A stretch of DNA of 64,000 nucleotides, taken from assembly GCA_904063045.1 (NCBI GenBank), contig CAJFCJ010000002.1:496001-560000 (forward strand). Direction: 5' to 3'. The translations under genes and the position numbers were made by a program. The notes under the pieces were generated by a model, which had not been told where the DNA came from, made no database searches, and was given only the letters and a program-made list of their open reading frames with translations. The DNA is from Dimorphilus gyrociliatus. Lineage: Eukaryota > Animalia > Annelida. Below, one piece after another: positions 9,711-39,700 of this stretch (position 1 is the stretch's first letter; every line of letters begins with the position of its first letter).

Positions 9711-12700
9711 ATGAAATACTTAGGTTGTTTGATTGTATTTTTACTGGCTTTCTGTGATGTCAAAGGTAAGGATAAGATCCTCTCTTTATAATTAAAAACA
9801 ACGAAACTAGATAAAATTACGACCAAACGACAAATATTAAAAACTTGCTAGAATTATAACTTTTAATAAATTAAAAAGTTAAAACATTTCCAAAAAGCAT
9901 ATTCTTAAGAAAAAGGATTGTCTTCGAGAGGAAAAAACGCTATAAATATACCGCACTTTCCTATTTGGAGTGATGCTCTTACAGTGCAAATCGAAAGCGC
10001 TGCCCTAATAAAAACCCAATGAATTGAACGGAAGCTATTCTTGTTCGGAAAGTTCTTTTTTCAAAATATTGACAGCTCTAACGCCATTAGCTCTTGATTG
10101 GAAATCAGTTATTTAAACGTAATAATACGCTTGATAATTCTCTTTAACTTTTCTCTTTTTCCTTTTATTTAAGTTAAAATTACCTGATCAGTAAATGTAG
10201 AATGAAGCATAAAGTAATTGAATGAAAAGAGCATATGTTACTTATATATGAATAGATTTAGCGGGTATCCATAGTCAAAAGAAAATAATCTCTATTTTCT
10301 TAAGATTTATTTATATTAATTTGATATAGATGTTAGAATAAGCAAAGTTAAAAACCTAATTAACTGAGTTTTATTCATGACATTTTTAATTTAATTTTGC
10401 ACCAAAAGTGAACCAAACGATTATTGAAAAATCGATTGTTTAAGATTATTCACAAATCACTCTGTTAAAAACCCTTTTTTGAACGAAAATTAATATGAGA
10501 AACAATCGGATTTAGACTATTAAACTAATTAATAATGATTTGTTATACGCAAATTGTTTGAGTAATAAGATGTAGTTTTTTAGTTGTTGTTTGAGCTTTT
10601 CGGGAAACATTAAAATCGATGTTAATTAGAATCAATATTTGGATTTGTTTATAGTGATGCTGGAAGATAGAAATATAGATTTCTAATTGATGTTTATTTG
10701 TTGCCATATAAACCAACCAATTACTTTATGTTGTATGTTACTGTTTTCATGGCAATATACTCACAGTACATATCACTTAATTGCATAAAAGTTTTATAAA
10801 ATCAATACGTAACAATTCTAAAAATTTTCTATTTATATTCAGAATAACCGTTGATAATTTCTTTATCATTAGATTTATCTATTCCTGCATATATATCCAG
10901 CATACAGTATATACAATACTAAAACTTAGTCTATTTTATACATTAAAAAGGCTATACTGTAGAAAAAGTACTATTGATAGCATAATTATTTTATAAAAAT
11001 CTTCTTAGGAACATTATCCTTCACTTCTCCCTCGGCTAACTCGGAGGTTCACTTGACTGAAAACAATAATGGTGACGCCGCATCACCTGTTACCATTTCT
11101 TTCAACCTGGAATCGAATGGAGGCGTAACACCTTATACTTATTCAATAGTAAGTGGGGGTGACAGCAAGTTTGAAATCGATACTTCTCCAGATCCTGATA
11201 TTTTTCGTCAAAAGTCTGGCGCTTTATTTGATTATGAAACAACTTCATCGTACACAATTGAGTTGAAAGTTATTGATAGCACTGGCGGTACCAGCCTTAC
11301 TGCTTCTGTAACTTTCACCGTTATAGTGGATGATTGGAACGACGAAACCCCTCAACTCGGTTCAGCTTCTTATACAGCATCAGTTGATGAATCTCAAGAT
11401 CCTGGTGCTGCTGTAACTCTCTCGCCAACTATATCGTCATCAGATGGCGATGCAATTGACAATGGAAATCTAAGATATAGCTTGACAGGGGCTGACTCTA
11501 CGTATTTTCAAATAAATGCGGTAAATGGAATCTTAAAAACATCATCAATTCTAGATGCTGATCCCTCTGGAAAAACTTACACAAATGTAAAAATCGTAGT
11601 AACTGATTTGGCGGGAAAGACCTCAACTGCTGCAGTCACAGTTACTGTTAATGACTTGAATGATGTCGTTCCCACATGCGATCCTTCAGTGTACTATGCG
11701 TCCATTAACGAAAACACTGCAGGTAAGAAACTTGATTGTACTAAATAATTAAAATATATTTGAAAATAAAAACAGTCAGCACATCACTATTGCAATTCTC
11801 TTGCACGGATACTGACAATACCGCCTCCTTTAAAGCTTTAACATTTTCAATAACTTCTGGGGATGATACGGGATCAGAAAAATTTCAAATAGCAAATACA
11901 AACGAATTACATACAACAACTACATCTTGCGACTATGAGGACTTAACTCAACAAAAATATACATTGGCTGTCACAGTTAAGGATGCAACAACAAACTTTA
12001 ATAGTGTCAATATAACAGCAATAATAAATGTACATATGAAAAAAAAACTGTCATACAAAACTAAAAAATACTAATTTCAGATAAATCCTATTAACGACAA
12101 CACACCCACGTGGTCATCTACGCCCACTGGTGGGTCATTTTATGAGAATCAAACAATCGGCGAGATACTCACTACATTGCAGGCTACTGACACAGACAAG
12201 GGAGCGAATGGAGACAATACCTTATCATATCACATAATTTCAGCAACTACACAAACGTCCGCTGATTCCTCGGCACTATTCAAAATAGATCCAATCACAG
12301 GAAATATTCTGACAGTCGCATCCCTAGATAAGGATACTGGCATAACAGAACACAGACTGGTAGTGAAGGCACAGGATGACGGAACTTCTCCTGGTATAAA
12401 GAGTGTGACGGCTTCCATAACATATACAATACTTGACTACAACGAATTTCAACCAACGTTTGACAAAACAATCTACACTGTCAGTATAAATGAAAATACC
12501 AACGTAGGTACAACAATCCAAACATTAACTGCAACTGACCAAGACGACACAAGTGCCTTTACCTTTAGGTAAGCAAACAATCATTAAATAAAAACAGCAA
12601 ATCATCACAAAATTCATCCGTTTATCAATATTCATGTTAGTAATAATGAAATCTTTATTTATTTAAAAAGTTTTGGAACCGGTAATGAATTGGATCATTT

Positions 12701-15700
12701 TGAAATAACAACTTCCTCTAACAATGGCCATGTGAAAATAAAAAGTACTATTGATCCTGATGGTGGAAGTCCACCTTCTTTCTATACATTGCAGGTAGGG
12801 GGACAGAAGATGATATTTTCTATTTGCTAAAATCTCATACATACAAAATGTACATTTTTATTTATAAAGGTTAAAGTGACTGATGGGTCATCTACACCAG
12901 CAGCACTCACTTCTACAGCCACCATTCAGATTTCAATATTGGATATAAATGATAATAATCCATCATTCTCTCCAGCTCCAGCACCATACAATGTATTAAA
13001 AATCCTATTACAATTATTGCTTTGCAAATTTTCTAATCAAATATTCTAAATAGTTGCCAGAAAATACTCCAGCAGGAACAACAATAATAACCCTTGTGGC
13101 CACTGATGATGACTTTAATAGTGAACTAACATTTTCAGAAGGAAGTATGTCATTTCTTATTTTATTGTAATTTGATTTGAAAATAAGAAATTTGTATTTA
13201 TTCTTTTCAGCTGGTGATACAAATGATAACTTTGCCATTCAAAGTGATGGAAAGATTGTTCTCCTCAAACAAATTGACTATGATACAATGGGAGTTAGCA
13301 AAATAATTAACCTCCAAGCAATTGTTAGTGATGGCTCAAATACAGCAACTGCTACTGCTCAGATTACAGTTACTGATGTGTCTGATTTAACACCAAGCTG
13401 CAACCCAGCTGCTGTATCCGCAAACATCAGTGAGACAGCATCTGTCAATGATGCAGTTGTTCAATTGTCCTGCTCTGATGATGGCAGTTTAACATATTCT
13501 ATTGCTAGTGGAAATACAAACACAGCATTCAAGTTTGTAAGTAATGAAATTCAAGTAAATGATATTGGAGCTGGTTCTACAGGTAATTTTCAATTATATT
13601 CTCAAATATAAAAACAAGGCTAATCAATGGGAAAATTTTCAGCCTTAGACTATGATGCTGGAGTGAAAGTGTACAATTTGATTGTTGATGTTTCTGATGG
13701 AACTAATACAATCAATGTACCAGTAACAATATCAATAAATCCAGTTGATGAAGGAGCACCAACTTTCACTAATACAGCAGTGAATGTCAATGAAAATGAG
13801 GTGGTTGGCTTTAGTGTTGCAACTTTTGCAGCATCTGATGTTGATGCAAGTCCACACAATGTTCAAAAGTACTCAATTACCTCAGGTTTTTGTTCAATTT
13901 TTTTTATCTCATATATATTACTGATGTATATAAATAGTAATAAGTAACTGATATATCTATCATGACTTTATTTTATTTAAAATTCTATTCCAACAGGAAA
14001 TAGCGAAGGAAAGTTTGTTATAAATCCATCTACTGGAGAAGTGTCTTTAAAAGACACTTTAGATTATGAGACAACCACCACATATGCTTTGACTATACAA
14101 GCAGATGATGGCACTGCAACTGGAAGTGGTATCTTGACAGTCAATGTTCAAGATATAAATGATAACACTCCTAGCTGTCCAAAATCTTTATACATTCCTA
14201 CTGCAGTAAATGAAAATGAAGCAAGTGACACTTTGGTTTTGAATTTAACAGAATGTAGTGATCCTGATACTTCATCAAATTTTGGATCAATTACTATGTC
14301 TATAACTGGAGATAATGGTCGATTTGCTGTATCCAACATGTTAATTAAAACTACTTCAACACCACTTGATTATGAAAGTGCAACAACTTATACTTTGATT
14401 ATAACATTGACCGATAATGGAGGTGTCAGTCCATCAAATACTGGAACTGTTACAGCTATAGTCAATGTAATTAGAAATAATGCAATATGTTCTTTTGGAA
14501 ATGTATTTATTTTTTTCTAAATTTCTTTTAAGGTTGCCCAATGAATGATAATACTCCTGCATGGAGCTCAACCCTACTGGATCAACTATTTCAGAGAGTA
14601 CAACAATTGGAACAACATTGTTAACATTGGCTGCCACTGATGCTGATCAGGGGTCCATTGGTGATAGCTCAATTACATATTCAATTGTCAGTGCTGAGGA
14701 TCAAGGTAAGATTAGTCATCTATGAGTTTTTTTTTTTAATTTCATCTATTTAAATTTAACAGCTGCAGTATCAACAATGAATCTATTCAAAGTTGGGCCA
14801 TCATCTGGACATCTACAACTTGTAGCCTCATTGGATAGAGATGCAGGGGTAACAGAACACCGGCTTGTTGTAAAAGCAGCAGATTCTGGTGCATCAGTCC
14901 TGAGTGTGACTGCATCCTTGACACTTACAATATCAGATTATAATGAATTCACACCAACATTTGATCATTTATTATACAATACAAAGTTGCAGAAAGTGCA
15001 GCTGTTGGAACAACTGTTTTGTCATTAACTGCTTCAGATTTGGATGCAACTTCTACTTTTGCTTTCAGGTGAGAATATTTTGTTTATCATTTGTAAGAGT
15101 TTAAGGAATATATATTTCACAACTATTTATTGTCTTAATGACAAAAGCCAGCTTTTTCCTTTTAAAAAAATGCTTATTAATCATTTTTTGTAAATATTTC
15201 TCTATATTGCAGCTATTCAAATAGTTGTAAACTTTTTTTATACCCTAAATAATAAGATTTTCTCTCTATTTATATTGTAAATATTTGCATGTCTTTAAAG
15301 ATTTTCTTTTCACTTCATCAATTAATGATGAAATGACAACAATTGTTTTTTACATCCAAAAATAGAAAGAATATTTCACTGTTTTAAAGATTTTCAAGCA
15401 AAAACTTCTAATTTATCAAAGCTTATCTTACCCATAATAAGATAGTACAACCAAACCCAATTATACTGAACCAATAGCTGTTGTATAAGAGAACAAACAT
15501 TCATAGTTGTTCACCTAAAGTGGGTGAAGTTTAGTGAAAAAGGAAGAATTGAGTTTCAGAAAGGATTCATTAAAATACGACAGGTTTACCCTAAACAGAC
15601 TTAATTGAATTTTATACTAAAATTCAACTGATTTCCAATCAAAATGCACATTTTAATTTATTATTTCTTGACTAAACATCAAAAAAAAGCAACAGCAATA

Positions 15701-18700
15701 GGTTATACCAAGGCAAATAAATGTGAACAAAAATATATGTCCAGTTAAATTTTTCTACAAATATTTATTTGCCTTATTTTAATAGTTTTGGAACTGGTAA
15801 TGAATTGGATCATTTTGAAATAACAACTTCCTCTAACAATGGCCATGTGAAAATAAAAAGTACTATTGATCCTGATGGTGGAAGTCCACCTTCTTTCTAT
15901 ACATTGCAGGTAGGGGGACAGAAGATGATATTTTCTATTTGCTAAAATCTCATACATACAAAATGTACATTTTTATTTATAAAGGTTAAAGTGACTGATG
16001 GGTCATCTACACCAGCAGCACTCACTTCTACAGCCACCATTCAGATTTCAATATTGGATATAAATGATAATAATCCATCATTCTCTCCAGCTCCAGCACC
16101 ATACAATGTATTAAAAATCCTATTACAATTATTGCTTTGCAAATTTTCTAATCAAATATTCTAAATAGTTGCCAGAAAATACTCCAGCAGGAACAACAAT
16201 AATAACCCTTGTGGCCACTGATGATGACTTTAATAGTGAACTAACATTTTCAGAAGGAAGTATGTCATTTCTTATTTTATTGTAATTTGATTTGAAAATA
16301 AGAAATTTGTATTTATTCTTTTCAGCTGGTGATACAAATGATAACTTTGCCATTCAAAGTGATGGAAAGATTGTTCTCCTCAAACAAATTGACTATGATA
16401 CAATGGGAGTTAGCAAAATAATTAACCTCCAAGCAATTGTTAGTGATGGCTCAAATACAGCAACTGCTACTGCTCAGATTACAGTTACTGATGTGTCTGA
16501 TTTAACACCAAGCTGCAACCCAGCTGCTGTATCCGCAAACATCAGTGAGACAGCATCTGTCAATGATGCAGTTGTTCAATTGTCCTGCTCTGATGATGGC
16601 AGTTTAACATATTCTATTGCTAGTGGAAATACAAACACAGCATTCAAGTTTGTAAGTAATGAAATTCAAGTAAATGATATTGGAGCTGGTTCTACAGGTA
16701 ATTTTCAATTATATTCTCAAATATAAAAACAAGGCTAATCAATGGGAAAAATTTTCAGCCTTAGACTATGATGCTGGAGTGAAAGTGTACAATTTGATTG
16801 TTGATGTTTCTGATGGAACTAATACAATCAATGTACCAGTAACAATATCAATAAATCCAGTTGATGAAGGAGCACCAACTTTCACTAATACAGCAGTGAA
16901 TGTCAATGAAAATGAGGTGGTTGGCTTTAGTGTTGCAACTTTTGCAGCATCTGATGTTGATGCAAGTCCACACAATGTTCAAAAGGTACTCAATTACCTC
17001 AGGTTTTTGTTCAATTTTTTTTATCTCATATATATTACTGATGTATATAAATAGTAATAAGTAACTGATATATCTATCATGACTTTATTTTATTTAAAAT
17101 TCTATTCCAACAGGAAATAGCGAAGGAAAGTTTGTTATAAATCCATCTACTGGAGAAGTGTCTTTAAAAGACACTTTAGATTATGAGACAACCACCACAT
17201 ATGCTTTGACTATACAAGCAGATGATGGCACTTGCAACTGGAAGTGGTATCTTGACAGTCAATGTTCAAGATATAAATGATAACACTCCTAGCTGTCCAA
17301 AATCTTTATACATTCCTACTGCAGTAAATGAAAATGAAGCAAGTGACACTTTGGTTTTGAATTTAACAGAATGTAGTGATCCTGATACTTCATCAAATTT
17401 TGGATCAATTACTATGTCTATAACTGGAGATAATGGTCGATTTGCTGTATCCAACATGTTAATTAAAACTACTTCACACCACTTGATTATGAAAGTGCAA
17501 CAACTTATACTTTGATTATAACATTGACCGATAATGGAGGTGTCAGTCCATCAAATACTGGAACTGTTACAGCTATAGTCAATGTAATTAGAAATAATGC
17601 AATATGTTCTTTTGGAAATGTATTTATTTTTTTCTAAATTTCTTTTAAGGTTGCCCCAATGAATGATAATACTCCTGCATGGAGCTCAACCCCTACTGGA
17701 TCAACTATTTCAGAGAGTACAACAATTGGAACAACATTGTTAACATTGGCTGCCACTGATGCTGATCAGGGGTCCATTGGTGATAGCTCAATTACATATT
17801 CAATTGTCAGTGCTGAGGATCAAGGTAAGATTAGTCATCTATGAGTTTTTTTTTTTAATTTCATCTATTTAAATTTAACAGCTGCAGTATCAACAATGAA
17901 TCTATTCAAAGTTGGGCCATCATCTGGACATCTACAACTTGTAGCCTCATTGGATAGAGATGCAGGGGTAACAGAACACCGGCTTGTTGTAAAAGCAGCA
18001 GATTCTGGTGCATCAGTCCTGAGTGTGACTGCATCCTTGACACTTACAATATCAGATTATAATGAATTCACACCAACATTTGATCATTTATTATACAATA
18101 CAACAGTTGCAGAAAGTGCAGCTGTTGGAACAACTGTTTTGTCATTAACTGCTTCAGATTTGGATGCAACTTCTACTTTTGCTTTCAGGTGAGAATATTT
18201 TGTTTATCATTTGTAAGAGTTTAAGGAATATATATTTCACAACTATTTATTGTCTTAATGACAAAAGCCAGCTTTTTCCTTTTAAAAAAATGCTTATTAA
18301 TCATTTTTTGTAAATATTTCTCTATATTGCAGCTATTCAAATAGTTGTAAACTTTTTTTATACCCTAAATAATAAGATTTTCTCTCTATTTATATTGTAA
18401 ATATTTGCATGTCTTTAAAGATTTTCTTTTCACTTCATCAATTAATGATGAAATGACAACAATTGTTTTTTACATCCAAAAATAGAAAGAATATTTCACT
18501 GTTTTAAAGATTTTCAAGCAAAAACTTCTAATTTATCAAAGCTTATCTTACCCATAATAAGATAGTACAACCAAACCCAATTATACTGAACCAATAGCTG
18601 TTGTATAAGAGAACAAACATTCATAGTTGTTCACCTAAAGTGGGTGAAGTTTAGTGAAAAAGGAAGAATTGAGTTTCAGAAAGGATTCATTAAAATACGA

Positions 18701-21700
18701 CAGGTTTACCCTAAACAGACTTAATTGAATTTTATACTAAAATTCAACTGATTTCCAATCAAAATGCACATTTTAATTTATTATTTCTTGACTAAACATC
18801 AAAAAAAAGCAACAGCAATAGGTTATACCAAGGCAAATAAATGTGAACAAAAATATATGTCCAGTTAAATTTTTCTACAAATATTTATTTGCCTTATTTT
18901 AATAGTTTTGGAACTGGTAATGAATTGGATCATTTTGAAATAACAACTTCCTCTAACAATGGCCATGTGAAAATAAAAAGTACTATTGATCCTGATGGTG
19001 GAAGTCCACCTTCTTTCTATACATTGCAGGTAGGGGGACAGAAGATGATATTTTCTATTTGCTAAAATCTCATACATACAAAATGTACATTTTTATTTAT
19101 AAAGGTTAAAGTGACTGATGGGTCATCTACACCAGCAGCACTCACTTCTACAGCCACCATTCAGATTTCAATATTGGATATAAATGATAATAATCCATCA
19201 TTCTCTCCAGCTCCAGCACCATACAATGTATTAAAAATCCTATTACAATTATTGCTTTGCAAATTTTCTAATCAAATATTCTAAATAGTTGCCAGAAAAT
19301 ACTCCAGCAGGAACAACAATAATAACCCTTGTGGCCACTGATGATGACTTTAATAGTGAACTAACATTTTCAGAAGGAAGTATGTCATTTCTTATTTTAT
19401 TGTAATTTGATTTGAAAATAAGAAATTTGTATTTATTCTTTTCAGCTGGTGATACAAATGATAACTTTGCCATTCAAAGTGATGGAAAGATTGTTCTCCT
19501 CAAACAAATTGACTATGATACAATGGGAGTTAGCAAAATAATTAACCTCCAAGCAATTGTTAGTGATGGCTCAAATACAGCAACTGCTACTGCTCAGATT
19601 ACAGTTACTGATGTGTCTGATTTAACACCAAGCTGCAACCCAGCTGCTGTATCCGCAAACATCAGTGAGACAGCATCTGTCAATGATGCAGTTGTTCAAT
19701 TGTCCTGCTCTGATGATGGCAGTTTAACATATTCTATTGCTAGTGGAAATACAAACACAGCATTCAAGTTTGTAAGTAATGAAATTCAAGTAAATGATAT
19801 TGGAGCTGGTTCTACAGGTAATTTTCAATTATATTCTCAAATATAAAAACAAGGCTAATCAATGGGAAAATTTTCAGCCTTAGACTATGATGCTGGAGTG
19901 AAAGTGTACAATTTGATTGTTGATGTTTCTGATGGAACTAATACAATCAATGTACCAGTAACAATATCAATAAATCCAGTTGATGAAGGAGCACCAACTT
20001 TCACTAATACAGCAGTGAATGTCAATGAAAATGAGGTGGTTGGCTTTAGTGTTGCAACTTTTGCAGCATCTGATGTTGATGCAAGTCCACACAATGTTCA
20101 AAAGTACTCAATTACCTCAGGTTTTTGTTCAATTTTTTTTATCTCATATATATTACTGATGTATATAAATAGTAATAAGTAACTGATATATCTATCATGA
20201 CTTTATTTTATTTAAAATTCTATTCCAACAGGAAATAGCGAAGGAAAGTTTGTTATAAATCCATCTACTGGAGAAGTGTCTTTAAAAGACACTTTAGATT
20301 ATGAGACAACCACCACATATGCTTTGACTATACAAGCAGATGATGGCACTGCAACTGGAAGTGGTATCTTGACAGTCAATGTTCAAGATATAAATGATAA
20401 CACTCCTAGCTGTCCAAAATCTTTATACATTCCTACTGCAGTAAATGAAAATGAAGCAAGTGACACTTTGGTTTTGAATTTAACAGAATGTAGTGATCCT
20501 GATACTTCATCAAATTTTGGATCAATTACTATGTCTATAACTGGAGATAATGGTCGATTTGCTGTATCCAACATGTTAATTAAAACTACTTCAACACCAC
20601 TTGATTATGAAAGTGCAACAACTTATACTTTGATTATAACATTGACCGATAATGGAGGTGTCAGTCCATCAAATACTGGAACTGTTACAGCTATAGTCAA
20701 TGTAATTAGAAATAATGCAATATGTTCTTTTGGAAATGTATTTATTTTTTTCTAAATTTCTTTTAAGGTTGCCCCAATGAATGATAATACTCCTGCATGG
20801 AGCTCAACCCCTACTGGATCAACTATTTCAGAGAGTACAACAATTGGAACAACATTGTTAACATTGGCTGCCACTGATGCTGATCAGGGGTCCATTGGTG
20901 ATAGCTCAATTACATATTCAATTGTCAGTGCTGAGGATCAAGGTAAGATTAGTCATCTATGAGTTTTTTTTTTTAATTTCATCTATTTAAATTTAACAGC
21001 TGCAGTATCAACAATGAATCTATTCAAAGTTGGGCCATCATCTGGACATCTACAACTTGTAGCCTCATTGGATAGAGATGCAGGGGTAACAGAACACCGG
21101 CTTGTTGTAAAAGCAGCAGATTCTGGTGCATCAGTCCTGAGTGTGACTGCATCCTTGACACTTACAATATCAGATTATAATGAATTCACACCAACATTTG
21201 ATCATTTATTATACAATACAACAGTTGCAGAAAGTGCAGCTGTTGGAACAACTGTTTTGTCATTAACTGCTTCAGATTTGGATGCAACTTCTACTTTTGC
21301 TTTCAGGTGAGAATATTTTGTTTATCATTTGTAAGAGTTTAAGGAATATATATTTCACAACTATTTATTGTCTTAATGACAAAAGCCAGCTTTTTCCTTT
21401 TAAAAAAATGCTTATTAATCATTTTTTGTAAATATTTCTCTATATTGCAGCTATTCAAATAGTTGTAAACTTTTTTTATACCCTAAATAATAAGATTTTC
21501 TCTCTATTTATATTGTAAATATTTGCATGTCTTTAAAGATTTTCTTTTCACTTCATCAATTAATGATGAAATGACAACAATTGTTTTTTACATCCAAAAA
21601 TAGAAAGAATATTTCACTGTTTTAAAGATTTTCAAGCAAAAACTTCTAATTTATCAAAGCTTATCTTACCCATAATAAGATAGTACAACCAAACCCAATT

Positions 21701-24700
21701 ATACTGAACCAATAGCTGTTGTATAAGAGAACAAACATTCATAGTTGTTCACCTAAAGTGGGTGAAGTTTAGTGAAAAAGGAAGAATTGAGTTTCAGAAA
21801 GGATTCATTAAAATACGACAGGTTTACCCTAAACAGACTTAATTGAATTTTATACTAAAATTCAACTGATTTCCAATCAAAATGCACATTTTAATTTATT
21901 ATTTCTTGACTAAACATCAAAAAAAAGCAACAGCAATAGGTTATACCAAGGCAAATAAATGTGAACAAAAATATATGTCCAGTTAAATTTTTCTACAAAT
22001 ATTTATTTGCCTTATTTTAATAGTTTTGGAACTGGTAATGAATTGGATCATTTTGAAATAACAACTTCCTCTAACAATGGCCATGTGAAAATAAAAAGTA
22101 CTATTGATCCTGATGGTGGAAGTCCACCTTCTTTCTATACATTGCAGGTAGGGGGACAGAAGATGATATTTTCTATTTGCTAAAATCTCATACATACAAA
22201 ATGTACATTTTTATTTATAAAGGTTAAAGTGACTGATGGGTCATCTACACCAGCAGCACTCACTTCTACAGCCACCATTCAGATTTCAATATTGGATATA
22301 AATGATAATAATCCTTCATTTTCACCATCAGTCTTTTCGCATTCTGTTAGTTGTTTTTTCTTTTTTTTTGAGTTTTTAAGTTTTTGTTTCAGATCCCTGA
22401 AAGTTTGAGTGTTGGTAGCACTGTTTTAACAACTGCAACTGCAACTGATGACGATTTTAATGCTAATTTGATTTATGTCAAAGGAGGTATACAGAAATTG
22501 TTTTCTTTTGTTATGATGCCAATTTGTTTTTTTTAGTTGGCGATAGTGACGGATATTTTGATGTTTTATCAAATGGTGATATACTGCTTGTGAAAAAGGT
22601 TGATTATGATACAATGGGTGTTAATAAGGTTGTTGAATTTGAATCAATTGTCAATGATGGTACTTCATCTGCTACGGGAACTGTTAAAATTACCGTTTTG
22701 AATACTCTTGATGTGATATTAAGCTGTAACCCATCATCTTACGCTTTTGCTGTCAATGAAGACGTTGCCGTCGACTCTTTAATTGCTAATATTTCATGTA
22801 CTGATGATGAACCACTTTCTTTTTCGTTCAAGTCGGGTAATATTGGTAATGCTTTCAAACTCGATTCTAATCTCTTAAAAGTTAATGATCCTGGTTCTGG
22901 CTCAGGTATTGTTTTTTGATTGGTTTGCTAGTTAATATCCTTTTTTTATAGTGTTAGATTATGACTCTTTATTGGCAATCTATGATTTAGTAATCAGTGC
23001 GACAGATGGATCAACAGTTTTTGATATCTCAATAAAAATAACATTGTTGCCAGTTAATGAATTTGCTCCTGTGTTTTTTGCAAAATCCATAAGTGTAAGT
23101 GAAGATGTTATTTTGGACTCCATTGTTGGAAATTTCACAGCTGTTGATAATGATTACAGTCCGCATAACGCATATAATTATGCAATTATTAATGGTTAAT
23201 TTTGTATTTATAGTAATTCTTTGGTTATAGACATATTTGATCTCTTTCAGGTGATATCAATCGTCAATTCATTATTAACTCTATTACTGGTGTTATCAAG
23301 GTGGCAAAAGCTCTTGATCGTGAAAGTATACCGTCATACGTATTAACTGTCTCAGCATCTGACGGTACAACGACAGCTGAAGGAAACTTAACAATTACCA
23401 TAGTGGATGCGAATGACAATTTTCCAAAGTGTAGTCAAAGCGTGTTTATACCTCCCCCATTACAAGAAAACTCTGCAAACGGAACTGTTGTTCAGTCTTT
23501 GAGTAGTTGTAGTGACTTGGATGATGGGAATTTCGGAAATTTTGAATTTATTCTGAATAATGGATTTGGAAAATTTGTAATAAATTCTAATGCAGTTACA
23601 GTCAACAATAATATTGATTATGAAACAGATATTTACAAATCATATACTCTCACAATAACTATGACAGATAATATTGCTAGCTCCCCCCAACTAAGTGAAA
23701 ATATTACAGTGATAATAAACGTAAGTTGAGTTGCCTAGAAATTGTTCAAATATTTATACAACATTTTTCGCAAGATTGAACCAATAAACGATAATTTGCC
23801 TGTTTGGGCGTCTAATTATGTTGGAGCGAGTATACAAGAAAATATTTCCATAAACGCAGTTCTCATCGATCTAGACGCTACAGATGCAGATATAGGAAAT
23901 AATGTCGATAGCAGTTTAACTTTTGCACTAATCAATTCTACAACGAATCGTAATTAGGTCTTTTAGTAAGAACCTTAATCTATTATATTTTCTTTCTTTT
24001 CAGTGGGGCAAGATTCTTCACCGCTTTTTAATATAAATCCTTTAACTGGAGAAGTATCTATTGCTCAAACTTTGGATGCTGATTTGGGAGTGACAGAACA
24101 CAGGTTATATATTAAGGTGGAGGATGCTGGAGTTGTTCCAATGAGCTTAAGTGCGACAGTAACGCTAACCTACACCATAGAGGACTTTAACGAGTATACT
24201 CCACAATTTGATAAATCCGTCTATGTTAATACCTCTATGGAGAATGAAGCTGTTGGATCCACAGTTCTCACAGTTACAGTCTCTGATCAGGACGCTACAT
24301 CCAACTTCTTTTTTGCGTCTGTTGATTTAAAATATTTATATTCGATCTAAACTCCTTTTACTTTGACAGAATAACAAGCGGAAATAGTGCTGGACACTTT
24401 GAAATAATTTCTTCAGGAAATCAGGGTTTTATTAAGATCAAAACCCTCATAGACCCTGACTCAGGGGCAACTGCCTCCTCTTATGATTTAACTGTGAGAT
24501 AGTGAGAAACAAGTTGAAAAAACCTTTACATATTCTAAAATTTTCAGATAGAGGTTACGGATGGCCATACCTTTCCAGAAGAAAAGAAAGCTACAACTCA
24601 TGCTAAAATAGATATTATTGGAATAAATGATAATCCTGTAACTTTTAGCAACCCAGCAACTTATAATGTAAGATTCGTTACATAAGAGTATCTTTCTTTA

Positions 24701-27700
24701 TTATCTTTTCTCCTTGTTAAGATGGCCGAAAATACGCCAGCGGGAACAACCCTTTTTTCTGTGGTTGCTGCAGATGTTGACTTTGATAGCACTTTGACTT
24801 ATTCAAAGGGATGTGAGTGATTTTTAGTACTCTATGTGCTCTTTTAATTATACGATATAAATTGTAGCGGGAGATTCAAATAACGAATTTGCAATTGAAA
24901 GCGATGGAAAAGTTGTCCTTTTGAAACATATTGACTATGATACTCTAGCTGATCCAAAGTACATTACTTTTGAAGCGATTGCAAATGATGGAACAAATCA
25001 AGCAACAGCTACTGTTCAAGTGAACGTAACAAACGTATCAGATCTGACACCAAGCTGTAACCCTGCAACACTAGCTCCTAATGTAAGCGAGACTGCCTTG
25101 GTTGGTCATATCGTTGTTCAACTAGACTGCTTAGACGATGGAACTTTATCATATTCAATTACAAGCGGAAATACAAACTCAGCTTTCATGTTGGTTAACA
25201 ATCAAGTACAAGTCAGTGATACTGGGTCTGGTTCAACAGGTAAGTTAAATAGTCTAAAACATAGAACTCAAGCCTATTTGATATATCTTTCTCTCTATAT
25301 ATATATATCCTAGACTTGGATTTTGATTTTGGAACAAGAATCTACGATTTGATTACGGCTGTTTCTGATGGAACCAATACTATAAACGTTCCGATTACCA
25401 TTTCTGTTATGCCTGTCGATGAAGGTCCCCCCGTATTTACCAATGCCTCTATTGACATCTCAGAAGATGCCAAAATTGGAGCGCTTGTTACTACCTTCAT
25501 AGCTACAGATGTCGATAAAGACGTACATGATATTCAAACTTATATCATTTTAGACGGCAATGTGGAAGGAAAATTTATCATAAATTCGAAAACAGGAGAA
25601 ATTACTATAGCAGATTTGTTAGATTATGATGCAGGTACAAAGGCATACGATCTTAAGATCCGAGCATTCGATGGGACAAACTATGGAACTGGATTCCTTA
25701 CTGTTAATGTTCAAGACACAAATGATAATATTCCTACTTGTTCCCAAAGCGTATTTATAAATAATACATTATCCGAGAAGTCTGTTGTAAATACATTTGT
25801 TATGGATTTGACATCCTGTCACGATGTCGATGATGGAGTCAATGGTGAATTTGACTTTTCTATGACTGGTGATAGTGGTAATTTCCAAATCGCAAGTAAA
25901 ACTCTATCAACAAAAACAACGTTGGATTATGAGTCTACATCTATGTATTCTCTGATTATCAAAATGACAGACAGAGCTGCTAGTGCTCCTAAGAAAACTG
26001 GAACAATTACAGTTTTAGTTTATGTAAGTGTGTAAGCTTTCTTTAAACTGCACTGTATAGGTATATTTTCCATTAGCTTATTCCTGAAAATGATAACACT
26101 CCGGTTTTTGAAGCTTTCGTTCCTGTATATAACCCAGCTACACACTATTCAATTGATGAAAGTATAGCAGTTGGAACATCGGTCGCTAGAATTGCTGCTT
26201 CTGATGCAGATTTACCTGCTAATTCAGACGATGCGAAAATTGCATTTAGCATAAAATTAATAACGGCTAGTTTAGTAAATACATCTTCGGTTGCTGACGA
26301 ATCATTTAAAATTGAAACTGAGAGTGGAATAATTAAAACCACAAAAGAAATCGATCGGGATACTTCAACCGGAGTTGAATATTTTGAGCTGGTTGTCATG
26401 GCCTCCGATCAGGGAAATCCTTCAAATTCAATTGAAAGCACAATTAGAATTATAGTTACTGATGTTAATGACAATAATCCAACTTTTCAACAAACTGTTT
26501 ATGAATCGTCTGTAAATGAGGGATCTGGTATCGGAATTTCGGTACAACAACTTGCAGCTGCAGATATTGACCAGAATCCTGTGTTTACTTATAGCATACA
26601 ATCGGGAGATGAGGGATTTTTTACAGTTCATGCTAATTCAGGACTCATATCGACGACAGCGAATGCCATTAACCTTGATCATGGAACAGCTGACAGCGCT
26701 TCGTATACTTTAATTGTTACTGTTTCAGATGGTCAATCTACAGCGAAAACAGCAACCGCGACCGTTTTTATACAAGTATCTCCTACCAATGACGCAACCC
26801 CAGTGTTCAATCCTATTGTCAATCCGTCAATAGCAGAAACAGTTTCTGTTGGAGAAGTTATTGGAGGTGTAACTGCCACTGATGATGACTATTCGATAGA
26901 TGGACAAATTAAATATTTTAAAACCAGTCCAGATAATATGTGGAACGTAGATCAGATATCAGGTGACATAACTCTAGCTAAGCCGATCAATTATGAAAAT
27001 GCCAGTGAGCATGAGATAGTAATAGAAGCAAGAGATCAGGCACTATCTAATGCAAAAACTGCAACTGCGACGGTTACCGTATCCGTGACAGACGTTTCTG
27101 ACGAAGCACCAACTTGTCAACAGTACTCTTTTATTGTCAATCTTTTGGAAAATTCAACAGTTTCTAGCCAAGTAAGTTTATTTTATATAACAAAGTTATT
27201 CAATAATTGACACAAGCAAGTTGACCTTACTTAGAAAATACCTTTTAGTAAAAAAAGTAAGTTGGTGTGAACGTTGAAAGATCAACGATTTTCTATAAAA
27301 GTGTTCCGTTTGGTGTGGCAGTAGGTCTGTGGGATTCCATAAAAACATTAATGTGTTTACCCTAAAAAAGCTGCAATTTTGTCCAGAAATTCATCGCCCT
27401 CTCATGTATTGCCCTTTGCTAAAAACAAACTATACTATAGAGTATAGGTACTGGGCGCTATATGACATGTGACTCTTTTAAGATATAAACATGAAATTCT
27501 CACAAAAAGTACACAATAGAATATACTTTTACTGGCAATTTTATTTTCACTCCGTAAACTATTTTAAAACATTGGACAAACGCATTTTAAATAGCGAAAG
27601 ACTTATACTATATACTTTATAACAGACTGGCATTGACATTAATTGTGAGGATGTTGACCTAATGGATGTTCCTGTGTATAGTTTTGTATCAGCTGTCAAT

Positions 27701-33700: not shown

Positions 33701-36700
33701 GATAGTAAGAAAAACTATCTCAATACTAAGCACGTGATTTCAGATAACTATTTTTTTCAGGCTCCCTTAACAATGCAATTGAGTTCTTTAGAATAGATCC
33801 AATCGGAGGAAAAATTACTACAACGAAGTTGTTTGATTATGAATCAATAAAATCTTACTCTATATATGTTCAAGCATCTGATGGGAATGTATCACCAATA
33901 ACATCTGTATTACAAGTCGATGTTGCTATAACTGATGTAAATGATAATTCTCCCATTTTCAATCAAAGCACTTACAGCTTTTCAGTCTTGGAAAATGAAA
34001 TAACTAATGCTACAATTCATAAATTTATTGTGACTGATAAAGATTCAGTATCTACGAGCTTTAGTTATGAATTGCAAGCAACAGGGGTAGCAGCAGCTAA
34101 ATTCAGTCTAAAGAATGGTAATACTGATGAGTTGTTACTAAAAGAGCCTATTGAACCTGATGGAAATGCACCAGAGCCTACACAATATCAATTAATTATT
34201 AAATGCAAAGATAATGGAAGCCCTGAAATGACAGCAACAGCAACGATTCATATCACCGTCACTTCTGTAAATGACTACAGTCCTGCCTTTGTTGCTGGTG
34301 TGAGCACTACTATACCTCTACAAGAATCCCAACCTGTTGGAACAAGTTTTCAAACTCTCACAGCCAATGATGATGACTTTGGCCCTGCTGGAGATATAAC
34401 TTACAGTAAAGTAGATGGTACAGATCCTGATGGGTATTTTGTAGTGGACTCAGGCACTGGAAAACTTTTCCTAGCAAGGAAATTAGACTATGAAAACCCT
34501 TTAAATCGTAGTTTGTCTTTTAAAGTACAAGCAATAGACTCGGATTTATCAAGTCCTAGGACAGGTACAATCGAAGTAACTGTTAATGTTGGTGACGATG
34601 ACGATAACCCTCCTGTGTGTCAAGAAAAGTCTGTTACTGTGTCATTTAATGAGACTACTCCAGTTAACACGCTTATTGTTTCGCCCAACCTAAATTGCGA
34701 AGATCCAGATTCAATGGACAACAACCTTATCTACTTGGTAATGGGAAATTTTAATGATGATATAATTGTTGAAAATAATACCGCAGGCGTCATAAAATTT
34801 GCAAATTCTCCAGACTACGAGATTCATAAACAATATAATTTGGAAGTTATTGCAATAAGCAAGGGCAAATCCACAACTGTCTTTGTAACGATAATAATCA
34901 ATCCAATCAATGATAATGATCCGATATTTGCATCGAATATGACTATCAGTAAATCTGAAGATATTCCAGTTGGTGAAATAATTTCAACATATCAAGCCTC
35001 AGACTTGGATTTAGGTGCTGATGGTATAATTACTTACGAAATAAGCAGTGTTACAAATTCTGGCATTATGCACTTCCTGATAAATAGTATCACAGGAGAG
35101 ATAAAACTAAAGAAACAACTGGACTTTGAGCAAAATAAAGATTTTACTATATCTGTTATAGCCACAGATGGCGGAACACCTCCCAGAAAAACTTACGGTT
35201 TCATTAACCTGACGGTAACAGATATAAATGATAATGCTCCAAACTGTTTAATCAAAACAGCAGTCATAGTCCAAGAAGAGGCGACTTCTTTAGGAAATTT
35301 ACCCTTACAACTTATTCCAGATCTTGGCTGTACTGATGCAGATTCTGGTGTAAATGGGGCTTTAAGCTACACCGTCGTTGAAAATTCAGGTGCTAATATT
35401 TTTTCGATAAATCCAGGCTTTTCTGGGAGAGGAGAATTGAATTTGACAAATAGCATGGATTATGAAACGAAGCGTGACTACACTTTGAAAATTACTGTCC
35501 AAGACGGAAGATTAAAATCTGTAGAAATTCCAGTTATCATATCAGTTAAGGCTGTCAATGAAGCCGGCCCTGTGTTATTAAATCAAATAGTCACAGTGAA
35601 AGAGACTGATCCAATCAATACAGATGTAACAGATATGATTGGAACTGATATTGACAGCAATGACCACCCACATGGTACACTAATCTATAGTATTGTTGAC
35701 GGAGACCCAAGTAATAGATTCTTCATTGACCCTCTTAGTGGGAGAGTCAAAATAGCTGGTCCATTAGATAAAGAAATGCAATCAGTATATCATTTAATTA
35801 TAAATGTAATAGAAGTTGCAGAAACAAATTCCATCAATGCAACTCTTACTGTTAACATTGCAAATGAGAACGATAATATACCAAACTGTACTGTCAAATC
35901 TTTCATTGTATCTGTTCCTGAAAATACAATGGTCTCTCCTGTTAATCCTTATGAATTAATCAACCTTGGTTGCTCCGATAGAGACAAAAACAATTTGACT
36001 TATGCTTTAACATTTGGTGATGGCTCCTATTTTGAGGTAAATTCGTCTGGAATAGTCAAGTTGAAGTCTGTTGTTGATTTCGATGGCCCAAGTAACCTTC
36101 GAGAATTCAATCTCGTTATTAGTGTATCAGACACTAATTACACTATCACAATAAGAGGAAAAGTTGTTATTGTCCCTGAGAATGAAGGAACACCAAACTT
36201 CACAGCCAACGTTTTCCTTATAAGTGTTAATGAATCTGCTGGCATAGGTTCAACATTATTAAGAACAGAAGCTACCGATATCGATTCTCCTGACACAAGT
36301 CACGGCAGAATAACTTATTCATTTAGCAATGGGTCACATGAACCATTTATCATTCAACCAGAAACAGCAGATATAATTTTGGCATCAGGTATGTATAATT
36401 TGAAGTATGTTCCCTAAGATTTATAAAGTTTTACATATAGGGCTCGATAGAGAAACTAAAGACTCCTATGAATTTGAGATCAAAGCGTCAGATGGTCAAC
36501 TAAGTTCTTCTGTTTCTGTTACGATCCAAGTGACAGATGTAAATGACAATACACCCAAATTTAATCCCCTAACTTACTTCAAAGCAGTTAGAGAGAACGA
36601 AACAGTTGGTAGCAGCGTGATCACTGTGCATGCTACTGATTTGGATGATCCTTTAACGAATTCTCATGGAAACATATCTTACTCGATCGAATCAGGAAAT

Positions 36701-39700
36701 GTTGGATCAGCTTTTAGCATTAATCCGGTATCTGGCAGAATTGACATCTCAGCATCTCTGGACTATGAAAGTATAAAATCTTATGAGATAGTTACTATAG
36801 CTGTAGATTCTGAAGGATCGGCGGTATCCAAAACAGGAACAACCTTAGTAGTCATAAATATTGAACCATCGAATGATAATATTCCAGTTTTTCAACTAAC
36901 TCCATATTCAACGTCCATACAAGAGAATCTGCCTGTGGGATCGTCAGTATTTCAAGTTAGCGCTACGGATGCCGATGATGACATTGATGGCAGATTGTTT
37001 TTCACAATGAATAATCATCCTAAATTTCATCTAGACTCTGAAACAGGAATCATATCTGTCAAAGCTTTGTCTGATTATGAAATTTTAGACGAGCGATTGT
37101 TCACCTTCACAATTATAGCAACTGATATGGGACAGCCTCCTAATAGTGTTGCTCAAAATCTCACAATAATGATTACAGACGTAAATGATGTAAGTCCTGT
37201 CTGCACGCCTAAGTTATACACTAAAACCTTAAGGGAAGACGCTCCAACTTCAACAATTGTTCTTGCTCCATCTTGCTCAGACGAAGATTCTGGAAGTAAT
37301 GCAGAATTGGAGTATGCAATTTTAACACCTCCAGGCTCATCTGGAGATTTCAACATAAATGCGACAACAGGCGAAGTATCGTTAGGTACAAGCTTAGATG
37401 CTGAAGTTACTCAAAACCACTTGATTTTCATCAGAGTATCAGATCGAGGTACCCCTTCTTTGAGTACAACTGCCAGTATAATGGTTACAGTCACTGATGT
37501 AAATGAACACTTTCCGGACTTTGGTAACTCAACAACAAACATTACTATTAATGAAGATTTATCTGTAGGGTCAACTTTTGCCCAGATAACGGCTACAGAT
37601 GAAGATGTTGAGAAAAAGATATCCTATAGCTTGCATCCCTCATCTGAAACATTTGATATTGATACAAGAACTGGCCAAATTAAACTTTTAAAACAATTAA
37701 ATAGAGAATCGATCAACTTTTACCTATTAACAGTTAGAGCGGTCGACTTTGGTATAATAGACGAAGTTAAATATCTTGACCATAATTTATCAGTAAACAT
37801 TGGAGATATAAATGAGAGGCCAACTTTCTCTCCCACAACATATGTCGTATCATTAGCCGAAAATTTTACAATTGGCAATACTGTTATTGTTGTTTCTGCT
37901 TCCGATGATGACCTTAATGCAGAAGGAACCATAGATTATTCAATATTTTCCGGCAATGCAGAAAATAAATTTTCCATCAGCAAAAACAATGATGGAAATG
38001 GTCAACTTGTTTTATCAGCTGAATTAGATTTTGAAGTTACAAAAGAATATACGTTGACCATTTATGCTGCCGATAACGGAATACCATCTTTAACGTCATC
38101 TGCTATCGTAAATATTAGAGTTACAGGAATAAATGAGGCATCACCAATTTTCAGTCAAAATTTTACAGAATCTATCAGTGAACTAGCTGCAATTGGTCAA
38201 GTCATTCAGACAGAAATTGCAACAGACAGTGATCATGGAATAGATGGTCAAATCATATATTCCCTGCTGGGTAGTGACTCATCGATTGTAACTATTGATG
38301 CAATTACTGCCACAATAAAATTAGTGACTTCTTTAGATAGGGAAGTTAAAGACTCATATACTATGGTTATTCAAGCAATGGATCTAGGGGTTCCTTCTAA
38401 AACTGGAAGCGCTACTTTGGTTTTAACTGTAACAGATAGAAACGATAAAAAACCTGTTTGCTCCCCTGCTTCAATAGTAACTTCATTCCCTGAAGATAAA
38501 ACAGGATCTTTGGTCACATTAAATTGTACGGATCTTGATTCAGCCATTTCTAATTTCAATGTTATTTCATATTCACTATCTGGTAGTGACGCATCTCATT
38601 TCCAGGTTGATTCCAGTACAGGAGAAATAAGTCTTGGAAATGGATTAAACTTCGACTATGAAACAAAAAAATCTTTCAAATTTTCATCCACTGCAATGGA
38701 CGGCGGTGGTAGTCTCTTAAATGTTCCTGTATCCATTCAAATTACTGGAGTAAACGAGCATAGTCCTGCTTTTTCATCGTCTACATTTAATTTAAATATA
38801 TCCGAGAGCACTACTGTTTCTACTTCTGTAGCATCCTACACAGCTGTTGATGATGATCATGGAATAGATGGCGAATTGCGTTATAAGATTTTTTCTGGAA
38901 ATGAGGACAACCACTTCATTTACGACTCAATCAGTGGCGATTTGATAGTAGCTACCGATTTAGATAGAGATATTTTACCCAATAGTTTCTCATTAACATT
39001 GTTCGCTATTGACGCAGGATCTCCGAATAGAACAGGATCAGCAACGCTGCTTATTACCTTGATCGATACAAACGACAACTTCCCAACTTGTAATATCACG
39101 CTATATGGTGGAGTAGTTACAGAAGGAGTTACTTCAAACGGATTCACAATTGTGACTTTATCGCAATTCTGTAGAGACATTGATGAAGGCGTTAATTCTC
39201 AAATAGCTTATACAATAACAAACGGTAACGAAGCAGGTATATTTGAAGTGGATAGCAACACAGGGGAAGTAAGGGTGGCTGACAATACAGCCATTAATGC
39301 AGAAGCGGCTCTAAAACATTACCTAACCGTAAAAGTCGCTGACCAGGGAACACCTGCCAATTATATAGAAGTTTTCATTAGTATCAAAGTTCTTGACACC
39401 AATGAAGCTGCTCCTGTATTCTCTAATGCTCCATATACATCTACTCTAAGAGAAAACTCTGACTTATATGAAAAAGTCTATTTGGCTTCAGCTACAGATA
39501 CTGACAAGGGCATAAACGGAAAGTTTTTCTTCTCAATAGTTGGAGGCAACACCGAGGGAGCATTTCGTATTAACTCGGATACAGGCTTAGTGTACTTAAA
39601 TGGAACACTAGATAGGGAAAGATACGATACTTATAACTTAATTTTAAGAGTAACGGACAAAGGTCCTAATGAACTAAGCAGCGAAACGACTCTTACAGTG

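Follow-up and report, generated by a model that had tools for sequence, protein, structure and literature searches.

The window, a 64,000-nt stretch of the Dimorphilus gyrociliatus genome (GenBank assembly GCA_904063045.1, contig CAJFCJ010000002.1, positions 496,001 to 560,000), carries a very large cadherin gene in which a block of eight exons and their introns is repeated head to tail (Table 1). Exons make up 61% of this 3.1-kb unit, and the intron that joins one copy to the next is 717 nt long, against 57-111 nt for the other seven unit introns. Outside the array, the junction intron was found in the genome only on one further contig of the same assembly, C232. A transposon origin for this intron was considered and rejected, because the intron is confined to array copies. 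Four minus-strand open reading frames within the unit are without a family match, and an Rfam search of the unit gave only one sub-threshold chance match. Tandem Repeats Finder, with a longest period of 500 nt, below the 3.1-kb unit, did not report the array.

Table 1. Coordinates in the window of the tandem array and of the other parts of the cadherin gene. The copy lengths are the three periods of the array.
Feature	Coordinates	Strand	Remarks
Last two exons of upstream hexamer	12081-12568	+	55% and 58% residue identity with their paralogues, unit exons 7 and 8
Whole tandem array with its ragged edges	12659-22327	+	3.1 copies; exactly periodic block 12681-22314 (9634 nt)
Copy 1	12659-15773	+	3115 nt; substitutions 12665, 12668, 12680 at its edge
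Copy 1 exons	12671-12794, 12870-12992, 13054-13144, 13211-13582, 13643-13885, 13997-14466, 14533-14705, 14763-15068	+	
Copy 2	15774-18893	+	3120 nt
Copy 2 exons	15786-15909, 15985-16107, 16169-16259, 16326-16697, 16759-17002, 17114-17583, 17650-17824, 17882-18188	+	
Copy 3	18894-22011	+	3118 nt; sole copy with an open 1905-nt (635-codon) cassette
Copy 3 exons	18906-19029, 19105-19227, 19289-19379, 19446-19817, 19878-20120, 20232-20701, 20768-20942, 21000-21306	+	
Junction intron (intron 8)	15069-15785, 18189-18905, 21307-22023	+	717 nt
Partial fourth copy and hybrid exon 2	22012-22345	+	unit-identical up to 22314; exon 1 22024-22147; hybrid exon 2 22223-22345 (123 nt, donor GTTAGT)
Two downstream hexamers, unit exon layout	22393-26592	+	H+1 22393-24314, 36-49% identity per exon; H+2 24377-26592, 32-63%
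Large 3′ exons, same gene	33829-43615	+	27 further cadherin-domain matches; short introns of the ordinary kind (about 36390-36441 and 41130-41192)
Predicted transmembrane helix	43376-43453	+	26-residue hydrophobic stretch

The original prediction of a near-identical, in-frame triplication holds for the repeat itself, with 3.1 copies that are 99.74% identical over 6.5 kb, but in the assembly copy 3 alone has an intact frame. There, the proposed exon lengths of 124, 123, 91, 372, 243, 470, 175 and 307 nt, summing to 1905 nt, correspond to the sole open GT-AG chain. The copies had been described as differing by a few single-nucleotide indels and one substitution; the indels number seven, and the substitutions are three, all within the first 22 nt of copy 1. 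Repeat copies with no substitutions at all between them are also expected of a mis-laid repeat. A partial fourth copy, likewise predicted, is present and unit-identical over 22012-22314. It gives exon 1 and most of exon 2, in frame, to the next, diverged hexamer, with unit identity stopping in the hybrid exon right after the stretch that encodes DINDNNP. This geometry is an obvious substrate for unequal exchange, as had been suggested.

The unit exons give partial EC matches (Pfam PF00028), exon 6 alone scoring 78.9 bits against a cut-off of 28.8. Direct reading of the copy-3 translation identifies six linkers per unit, two of them canonical (DINDNNP and DINDNTP), one partial (MNDNTP) and three degenerate (DVSDLTP, PVDEGAP and SDYNEFTP). 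Since three of the six are without a full calcium-binding motif, the length of about 27 nm originally attributed to each unit is an upper bound. The neighbouring hexamers share the exon layout of the unit and are diverged, as anticipated, at 32-63% residue identity; the upstream one ends in AG/GTAAG, its phase equal to that of unit exon 8. Further downstream, the large 3′ exons reach PF00028 scores of 299-778 bits and lead into a membrane-proximal region, the predicted transmembrane helix and a basic tail of about 50 residues before the stop codon. The last three exons (3,253 residues) contain no Pfam match to EGF or Laminin_G, and the short tail has no recognised motif. Sequence searches with the C-terminus in the Atlas and the PDB returned generic cadherin matches and no subfamily, the solved structures closest in sequence to the C-terminal exon being those of CELSR1, clustered protocadherins, FAT4 and CDH23. 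Its EC matches and membrane anchor place the gene in the cadherin superfamily.

The base composition of the array sets it apart from its surroundings. Its observed/expected ratio is 0.08 for CpG, 1.43 for TpG and 1.44 for CpA, whereas the flanks show 0.66-0.91, 1.18-1.22 and 1.08-1.16, respectively. The CpG-poor zone begins at 12680/12681 and ends at 22314-22338, no more than about 25 nt from the ends of the repeat. Unit exons contain no NCG codons against 120 NCA codons (Fisher 1e-9 against paralogues), and C followed by G across a codon boundary occurs three times against 137 for T followed by G (Fisher 3e-9 against paralogues). Of the three Arg codons in the unit, two are still CGN, the losses falling at synonymous and intronic sites. 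The change is symmetric on both strands and lies in CpG context, and APOBEC-type clustered mutation was therefore rejected. Twenty retroelement loci in the same genome, belonging to a few families only, have CpG ratios of 0.03-0.19 and a like excess of TpG and CpA. Because the loss is confined to the array, spares CGN codons and carries this retroelement-like signature, it is probable that the cassette has existed in several homogenised copies over a long period without ceasing to code. The genome contains two PF00145 loci. D. gyrociliatus is reported to possess DNMT1, to be without DNMT3 and to have a negligible adult 5mC level of 0.16% (PMC11292947); methylation-driven loss would therefore need germline, early-stage or past methylation.

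Contig C232, recovered by a genome search with the junction intron, is 15,552 nt long, with five full units preceded by 161 nt and followed by 37 nt, and is without the flanks. It is of poor quality, each unit having 29-72 deletions (1-2%), and could be an assembler by-product of register-shifted overlaps. Across the eight copies, three on the scaffold and five on C232, there are no substitutions except the three at the edge of copy 1. The array flanks occur once in the genome, and searches with both found no contig of a second haplotype. A whole-unit search of the genome gave a 71% paralogue among the matches listed, and a word search with exon 6 brought up no fragment from the same species, its best matches being 39%-identical cadherin pieces from metagenomes. 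The published assembly (project PRJEB37657; PMC7854359) derives from a pooled culture and was produced with PacBio RSII, PBcR, Quiver, Pilon and HaploMerger2.

As C232 holds five further copies, the count of three is doubtful, and the true number of units probably differs from it. We think it rather unlikely that there are exactly three copies and that C232 is a spurious product of intra-array reads overlapping in shifted register. The scaffold does cross the array without gaps or N, the deletion rate of C232 is that of a thinly covered or unpolished contig, and it brings no sequence variant of its own. However, this flankless 15.5-kb contig is longer than the 9.7-kb array that would be its source, and the reads left over after scaffold building would imply more array DNA than the scaffold contains. 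A duplication made by the assembler, the genome having one unit and a flanking 0.3-kb direct repeat, would account for zero substitutions between copies, and the pipeline did include haplotype merging and long-read scaffolding. Yet the copies show independent error patterns on their two contigs, joins of the N or gap type are absent, and long reads readily bridge a repeat of 0.3 kb. Further, single-copy host DNA would hardly be expected to show transposon-like CpG erasure that stops precisely where the repeat does. We consider one true copy very unlikely, because eight copies lie in two contigs and the cassette bears the CpG-decay mark of long-repeated DNA.

The unit is entered in codon phase 1 and left in phase 2, and the flanking hexamers are alike in this respect. 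Because these phases match and the coding length is divisible by three, the frame is kept with any whole number of units, each predicted to lengthen the ectodomain by six EC domains. As assembled, copies 1 and 2 depart from this rule. Copy 1 lacks a C after 14536 and 14571 (exon 7) and after 14984 (exon 8), giving an exon sum of 1902 nt and 10 in-frame stops. Copy 2 has an extra A at 16747 (intron 4), an extra G at 16985 (exon 5) and, in exon 6, an extra T at 17232 and a missing A after 17475; its exons sum to 1906 nt, and the frame is lost downstream. If these changes were real, both copies would be frame-broken, and the gene would be decaying or would have to skip those exons. The stops and frameshifts are as such a gene would have them, and six of the seven indels do fall in exons, which account for 61% of the unit.

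Even so, six of the seven are changes in base-run length (the other is a lone missing C), the same kind as hundreds in C232, and every indel is private to one copy. The other 30 kb or so of the gene is open, and the CpG-decay pattern shows that the cassette was under purifying selection in the past. Real frame breakage is, in our judgement, scarcely credible. At six of the seven sites most of the eight copies have the copy-3 state, with a 4:4 division in a CCCC run at the seventh, and alignments of the flanking exons with unit exons are unbroken while the exons of copies 1 and 2 are split at the indels. All seven look like PacBio consensus errors, which may have gone uncorrected where short reads could not be placed uniquely, and the true unit would be the copy-3 sequence.

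Taking these lines of evidence together, we favour, with a probability of roughly 0.7 for the reading as a whole, a genuine array in which identical units of 3.1 kb follow one another within a giant gene for a single-pass cadherin, the array's indels being consensus errors, its copy number higher than in the scaffold or variable between haplotypes, and its units homogenised, long repeated and CpG-decayed under purifying selection. The real array would probably exceed three units, or vary among the haplotypes present in the pooled culture. The units may have been kept uniform by unequal exchange or gene conversion. About 90% of CpGs have been lost by retroelement-like decay to TpG and CpA, probably over a long period of repetition, with purifying selection presumably preserving the protein meanwhile.

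We speculate that the cassette is polymorphic in copy number, evolves in concert and determines, six domains at a time, how long the giant cadherin ectodomain is, and that the sharp-edged CpG erasure betrays, in an animal reported to be free of DNA methylation, a present or recent germline system marking any multi-copy DNA, working host exons included. We offer this tentatively, as a candidate that is more doubtful than probable. Exon-block arrays in giant modular genes are a known route to changes in protein length (nebulin, titin, apolipoprotein(a)), and the length of a cadherin chain sets its reach from the cell surface. More unusual is host coding DNA that has decayed like retroelements, exactly over the repeat, with CpG-normal paralogues on either side. 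The locus thus offers a clean natural experiment on whether cytosine methylation or mutation is drawn to repeated DNA as such in D. gyrociliatus. Users of the reference should also take care, since its scaffold understates or misrepresents the array, and apparent consensus errors break the gene model.

Within cadherins, we found no example of an intragenic exon-block array in the literature, and nothing relevant on cadherin-repeat arrays under concerted evolution. The gene resembles FAT, Dachsous, CDH23 and PCDH15 in its dozens of EC repeats, single transmembrane helix and mixture of canonical and non-canonical linkers, yet it differs from FAT and CELSR in having no EGF or laminin-G domains in its last 3,253 residues and only a short tail. 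To our knowledge, no array of identical cassettes occurs in the FAT, Dachsous, CDH23 or PCDH15 families.

Closer parallels to the array itself come from muscle genes. The NEB triplicate region comprises an eight-exon block present three times in tandem, and the segmental-duplication region of TTN a nine-exon block; in both genes the blocks are near 99% identical and in frame, and whole blocks tend to be gained or lost repeatedly (PMC9109913, PMC9142044). The present locus likewise has a head-to-tail multi-exon block, introns included, at 99.74% identity, with seven indels and three edge substitutions as the only differences. An open block divisible by three, with matching phases, is seen in copy 3 and at both flanks; the assembled copy 1 (1902 nt, with stops) and copy 2 (1906 nt) depart from it, probably owing to consensus errors. 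NEB and TTN, however, encode intracellular sarcomere rulers of vertebrates whose copy-number variation has been measured, whereas here an extracellular annelid cadherin has three plus five copies in its assembly and bears a CpG-erasure mark. In kringle IV type 2 of LPA, a multi-exon unit of a few kb is also repeated in frame, and copy number sets protein size; that unit has two exons and tens of copies, belongs to a secreted plasma protein, and is well documented as polymorphic.

The erasure mark is itself comparable to repeat-targeted methylation and deamination, as in animal transposable elements and fungal MIP and RIP, in its C-to-T change in CpG on both strands of multi-copy DNA, with sharp edges. 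Neurospora RIP prefers CpA, whereas the mutated context in the array is CpG. The host, for its part, is published as being without 5mC and DNMT3 (PMC11292947). Unlike the targets of MIP, RIP or transposon methylation, the array copies are mutually identical rather than independently mutated, and their coding capacity has been kept.

The repeat forms a single array at 12659-22327 (direct-repeat search and self-BLAST), with start-to-start spacings of 3115, 3120 and 3118 nt, or 3.1 copies of a hexamer, an eight-exon, six-domain block of a giant cadherin gene. The exon model comes from copy 3, in which we searched for exon chains with the eight originally predicted lengths as sole input, requiring AG/GT borders and an open frame. 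Exactly one chain resulted, with an exon sum of 1905 nt. Cadherin-domain pieces fall on the unit exons in Pfam searches (exon 6 by itself scores 78.9 bits), and the translation carries six linkers and therefore six domains, in agreement with the eight-exon, 1905-nt, six-domain unit of the original prediction. Two linkers are canonical (DINDNNP and DINDNTP), one is partial (MNDNTP) and three are degenerate (DVSDLTP, PVDEGAP and SDYNEFTP). Cadherin (EC) domains are ~4.5 nm long, and the earlier estimate of 27 nm per unit (six times ~4.5 nm) stands as an upper bound only, because three of the linkers are degenerate; the segment may be bent or flexible.

The claim that whole units preserve the reading frame holds for copy 3 and at both flanks. 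The upstream exon terminates in AG/GTAAG and agrees with unit exon 8 in phase, and exons 1 and 2 of the partial fourth copy read in frame into the next hexamer; therefore, any whole number of units would keep the frame. Successive copies are linked by intron 8 of the unit (the junction intron), which at 717 nt is ten times as long as the other introns of the gene, at 57-111 nt. Neither Rfam nor any protein family matches it, and in the genome it has no match outside the array copies of the scaffold and of C232, an orphan contig of the same assembly.

Coordinates of the array, its neighbouring hexamers and the methyltransferase loci (window positions unless a contig, C5 or C7, is named)
Feature	Position	Strand	Remarks
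End of upstream hexamer, exons 7, 8			55%, 58% identity to unit exons (tblastn)
Copy 3, exons 1-4	18906-19029, 19105-19227, 19289-19379, 19446-19817	+	unique open AG/GT chain
Copy 3, exons 5-8	19878-20120, 20232-20701, 20768-20942, 21000-21306	+	unique open AG/GT chain
Junction intron	15069-15785, 18189-18905, 21307-22023	+	
Partial copy 4, exon 1	22024-22147	+	
Partial copy 4, hybrid exon 2	22223-22345	+	123 nt; donor GTTAGT
H+1, first hexamer downstream	22393-24314	+	36-49% identity per exon (tblastn)
H+2, second hexamer downstream	24377-26592	+	32-63% identity per exon (tblastn)
Cytosine-C5 methyltransferase (PF00145)	C7:3564068-3565135		
Cytosine-C5 methyltransferase (PF00145)	C5:2895345-2896950		

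Searching the spliced cassette one exon at a time (the joined 635-codon reading served for the frame test alone) revealed the same eight-exon layout in the neighbouring hexamers, which are indeed strongly diverged, at 32-63% identity by exon. The gene was previously enlarged through hexamer duplication. The unit is closer to H+2 (exon 4, 63%; exon 3, 60%) than to the adjacent H+1 (43% and 45%), a possible sign of an older duplication that took in two hexamers at once. Downstream, the gene has large exons with 27 further EC matches and ordinary introns of 52-63 nt, and its last part encodes a membrane-proximal region followed by a transmembrane helix (43376-43453) and a short tail. Pfam detected no EGF or laminin-G domains in its 3′ exons, and sequence searches of the C-terminus assigned no cadherin subfamily. 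Short GT-AG introns and ~32% G+C characterise the window as a whole.

Near-identity of the copies, introns included, was also predicted, and holds at 99.74% (6,558 aligned bases), with the qualification that there are three substitutions and that six of the seven indels are exonic. The substitutions (12665, 12668 and 12680) all lie within the first 22 nt of copy 1 and, together with the indels, each of a single base, are the only differences among copies 1-3; periodicity is exact over 12681-22314 (9,634 nt). Neither edge of the array is a clean break. At the left one, which spans the acceptor and the first ten bases of exon 1, 19 of 22 bases agree; on the right, identity dwindles over 13 nt directly after the stretch encoding DINDNNP, the most conserved cadherin linker motif. 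Such edges would be the expected trace of exchange between old paralogues.

How many copies exist is a separate matter. The window (C2:496001-560000) belongs to a 77.9-Mb genome in 349 contigs; the published assembly of Dimorphilus gyrociliatus, ~78 Mb in ~350 scaffolds, is based on PacBio RS II reads processed with PBcR, Quiver, Pilon, HaploMerger2 and SSPACE-LongRead (PMC7854359). In a whole-genome search, the junction intron had three occurrences in the scaffold and six in C232, one of them truncated at the contig start, and each array flank occurred only once. In C232 (15,552 nt), five complete units lie between end pieces of 161 nt and 37 nt; along its whole length, the contig contains neither flanking sequence nor N. 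Its units measure 3047-3089 nt, shortened by 29-72 deletions each (1-2%). Beyond the three edge differences of copy 1, no substitutions separate the eight copies, and the scattered columns with mismatches each involve one copy only and lie next to indels. Since this pure-array contig exceeds the scaffold's whole array, either the scaffold is a collapsed version of an array that in reality, or in one haplotype of the pooled culture, counts at least five to six units, or reads from the array interior were chained by the assembler out of register. We consider a collapsed scaffold roughly three times as likely as such chaining, C232 probably being leftover array interior or a longer allele. Under either reading, a "triplication" is not established.

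In the assembly, copy 3 alone forms a hexamer that stays in frame. Three Cs are missing from copy 1, two in exon 7 and one in exon 8 (exon sum 1902 nt), and its shifted reading runs into 10 stops. Copy 2 gains a G in exon 5, a T in exon 6 and an A in intron 4 and loses an A from exon 6 (exon sum 1906 nt), so that frame is lost for everything downstream. At six of the seven indels, a base run differs in length (A4/A5, G/GG, T/TT, AA/A and, twice, CCCC/CCC), the seventh being a lone missing C. Each is private to one copy; most of the eight copies share the copy-3 state at six sites, with a 4:4 tie at one CCCC run. Flanking exons align unbroken to the unit exons. Given the published pipeline (PMC7854359), the indels are most simply explained as PacBio consensus errors that survived polishing, since 101-base polishing reads would find no unique placement in the array. 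The independence of these error patterns across the eight copies also speaks against a single copy duplicated by the assembler, the outcome named as refuting the original prediction. This is unlikely, as even the minimum real structure would be a unit flanked by a 0.3-kb direct repeat, easily spanned by long reads.

In 1-kb steps, the 64-kb window shows a single CpG desert, the array (12681-22337). The unit retains six CpGs in 3,118 nt, an observed/expected ratio of 0.08, whereas the gene has ratios of 0.91 upstream of the array and 0.66-0.79 downstream of it; TpG and CpA reach 1.43 and 1.44 (flanks 1.18-1.22 and 1.08-1.16). Desert and repeat edges match: CpG density is normal up to 12619, the next CpG, at 12680, is present in copy 1 but reads TpG in every other copy, a difference right at the boundary, and the first CpG past the array is at 22338. 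Unit exons contain no NCG codons versus 120 NCA (17-20% NCG in paralogues; Fisher test, 1e-9), and three cross-codon C-G versus 137 T-G (18-25% C-G in paralogues; 3e-9). CGN is kept in two of three arginine codons (CGA and CGG). The losses therefore fall on synonymous and intronic positions and spared the protein, a pattern indicative of gradual decay under purifying selection rather than a single burst, and of translation of the cassette.

Each of the eight copies retains all six surviving CpGs; the copies therefore share a very recent common ancestor, or are few physical copies seen repeatedly. Because the array consists of host DNA and lies between paralogues of normal CpG content, the decay was not imported with a mobile element, and we infer that it arose in this lineage while the cassette was repeated. 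That all copies are now identical requires continued homogenisation by unequal exchange or recent re-amplification from one decayed unit. Both imply copy-number turnover over evolutionary time, which indirectly favours the idea of a variable array but does not establish variation today.

CpG loss extends beyond the array. The genome is described as almost devoid of transposons. Twenty reverse-transcriptase loci from few families have CpG ratios of 0.03-0.19, with TpG and CpA at 1.3-1.5, against 1.09 and 0.71 at two single-copy methyltransferase loci. One PF00145 locus is an intronless open frame of 393 codons and the other is split over exons. RVT_1 has at least 150 matches in the genome, and many reverse-transcriptase loci lie within uninterrupted open frames of 1,000-2,400 codons and score identically, suggesting a young, possibly active retroelement family. 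The methylome of D. gyrociliatus shows 0.16% 5mC in adults and a genome CpG ratio of 0.9, with DNMT1 present and DNMT3 absent; its authors did not exclude earlier life stages (PMC11292947).

We found no literature report of an exon-block array in a cadherin, a weak negative. Intragenic exon-block arrays are already known as a kind, which the cadherin array joins. The LPA kringle IV-2 array is one analogue. Among the nearest are the nebulin triplicate region, in which eight exons occur three times and copy number changes recurrently, and the titin segmental duplication (PMC9109913, PMC9142044). More surprising than an array of this kind is the erasure of CpGs from working exons in a supposedly unmethylated animal.
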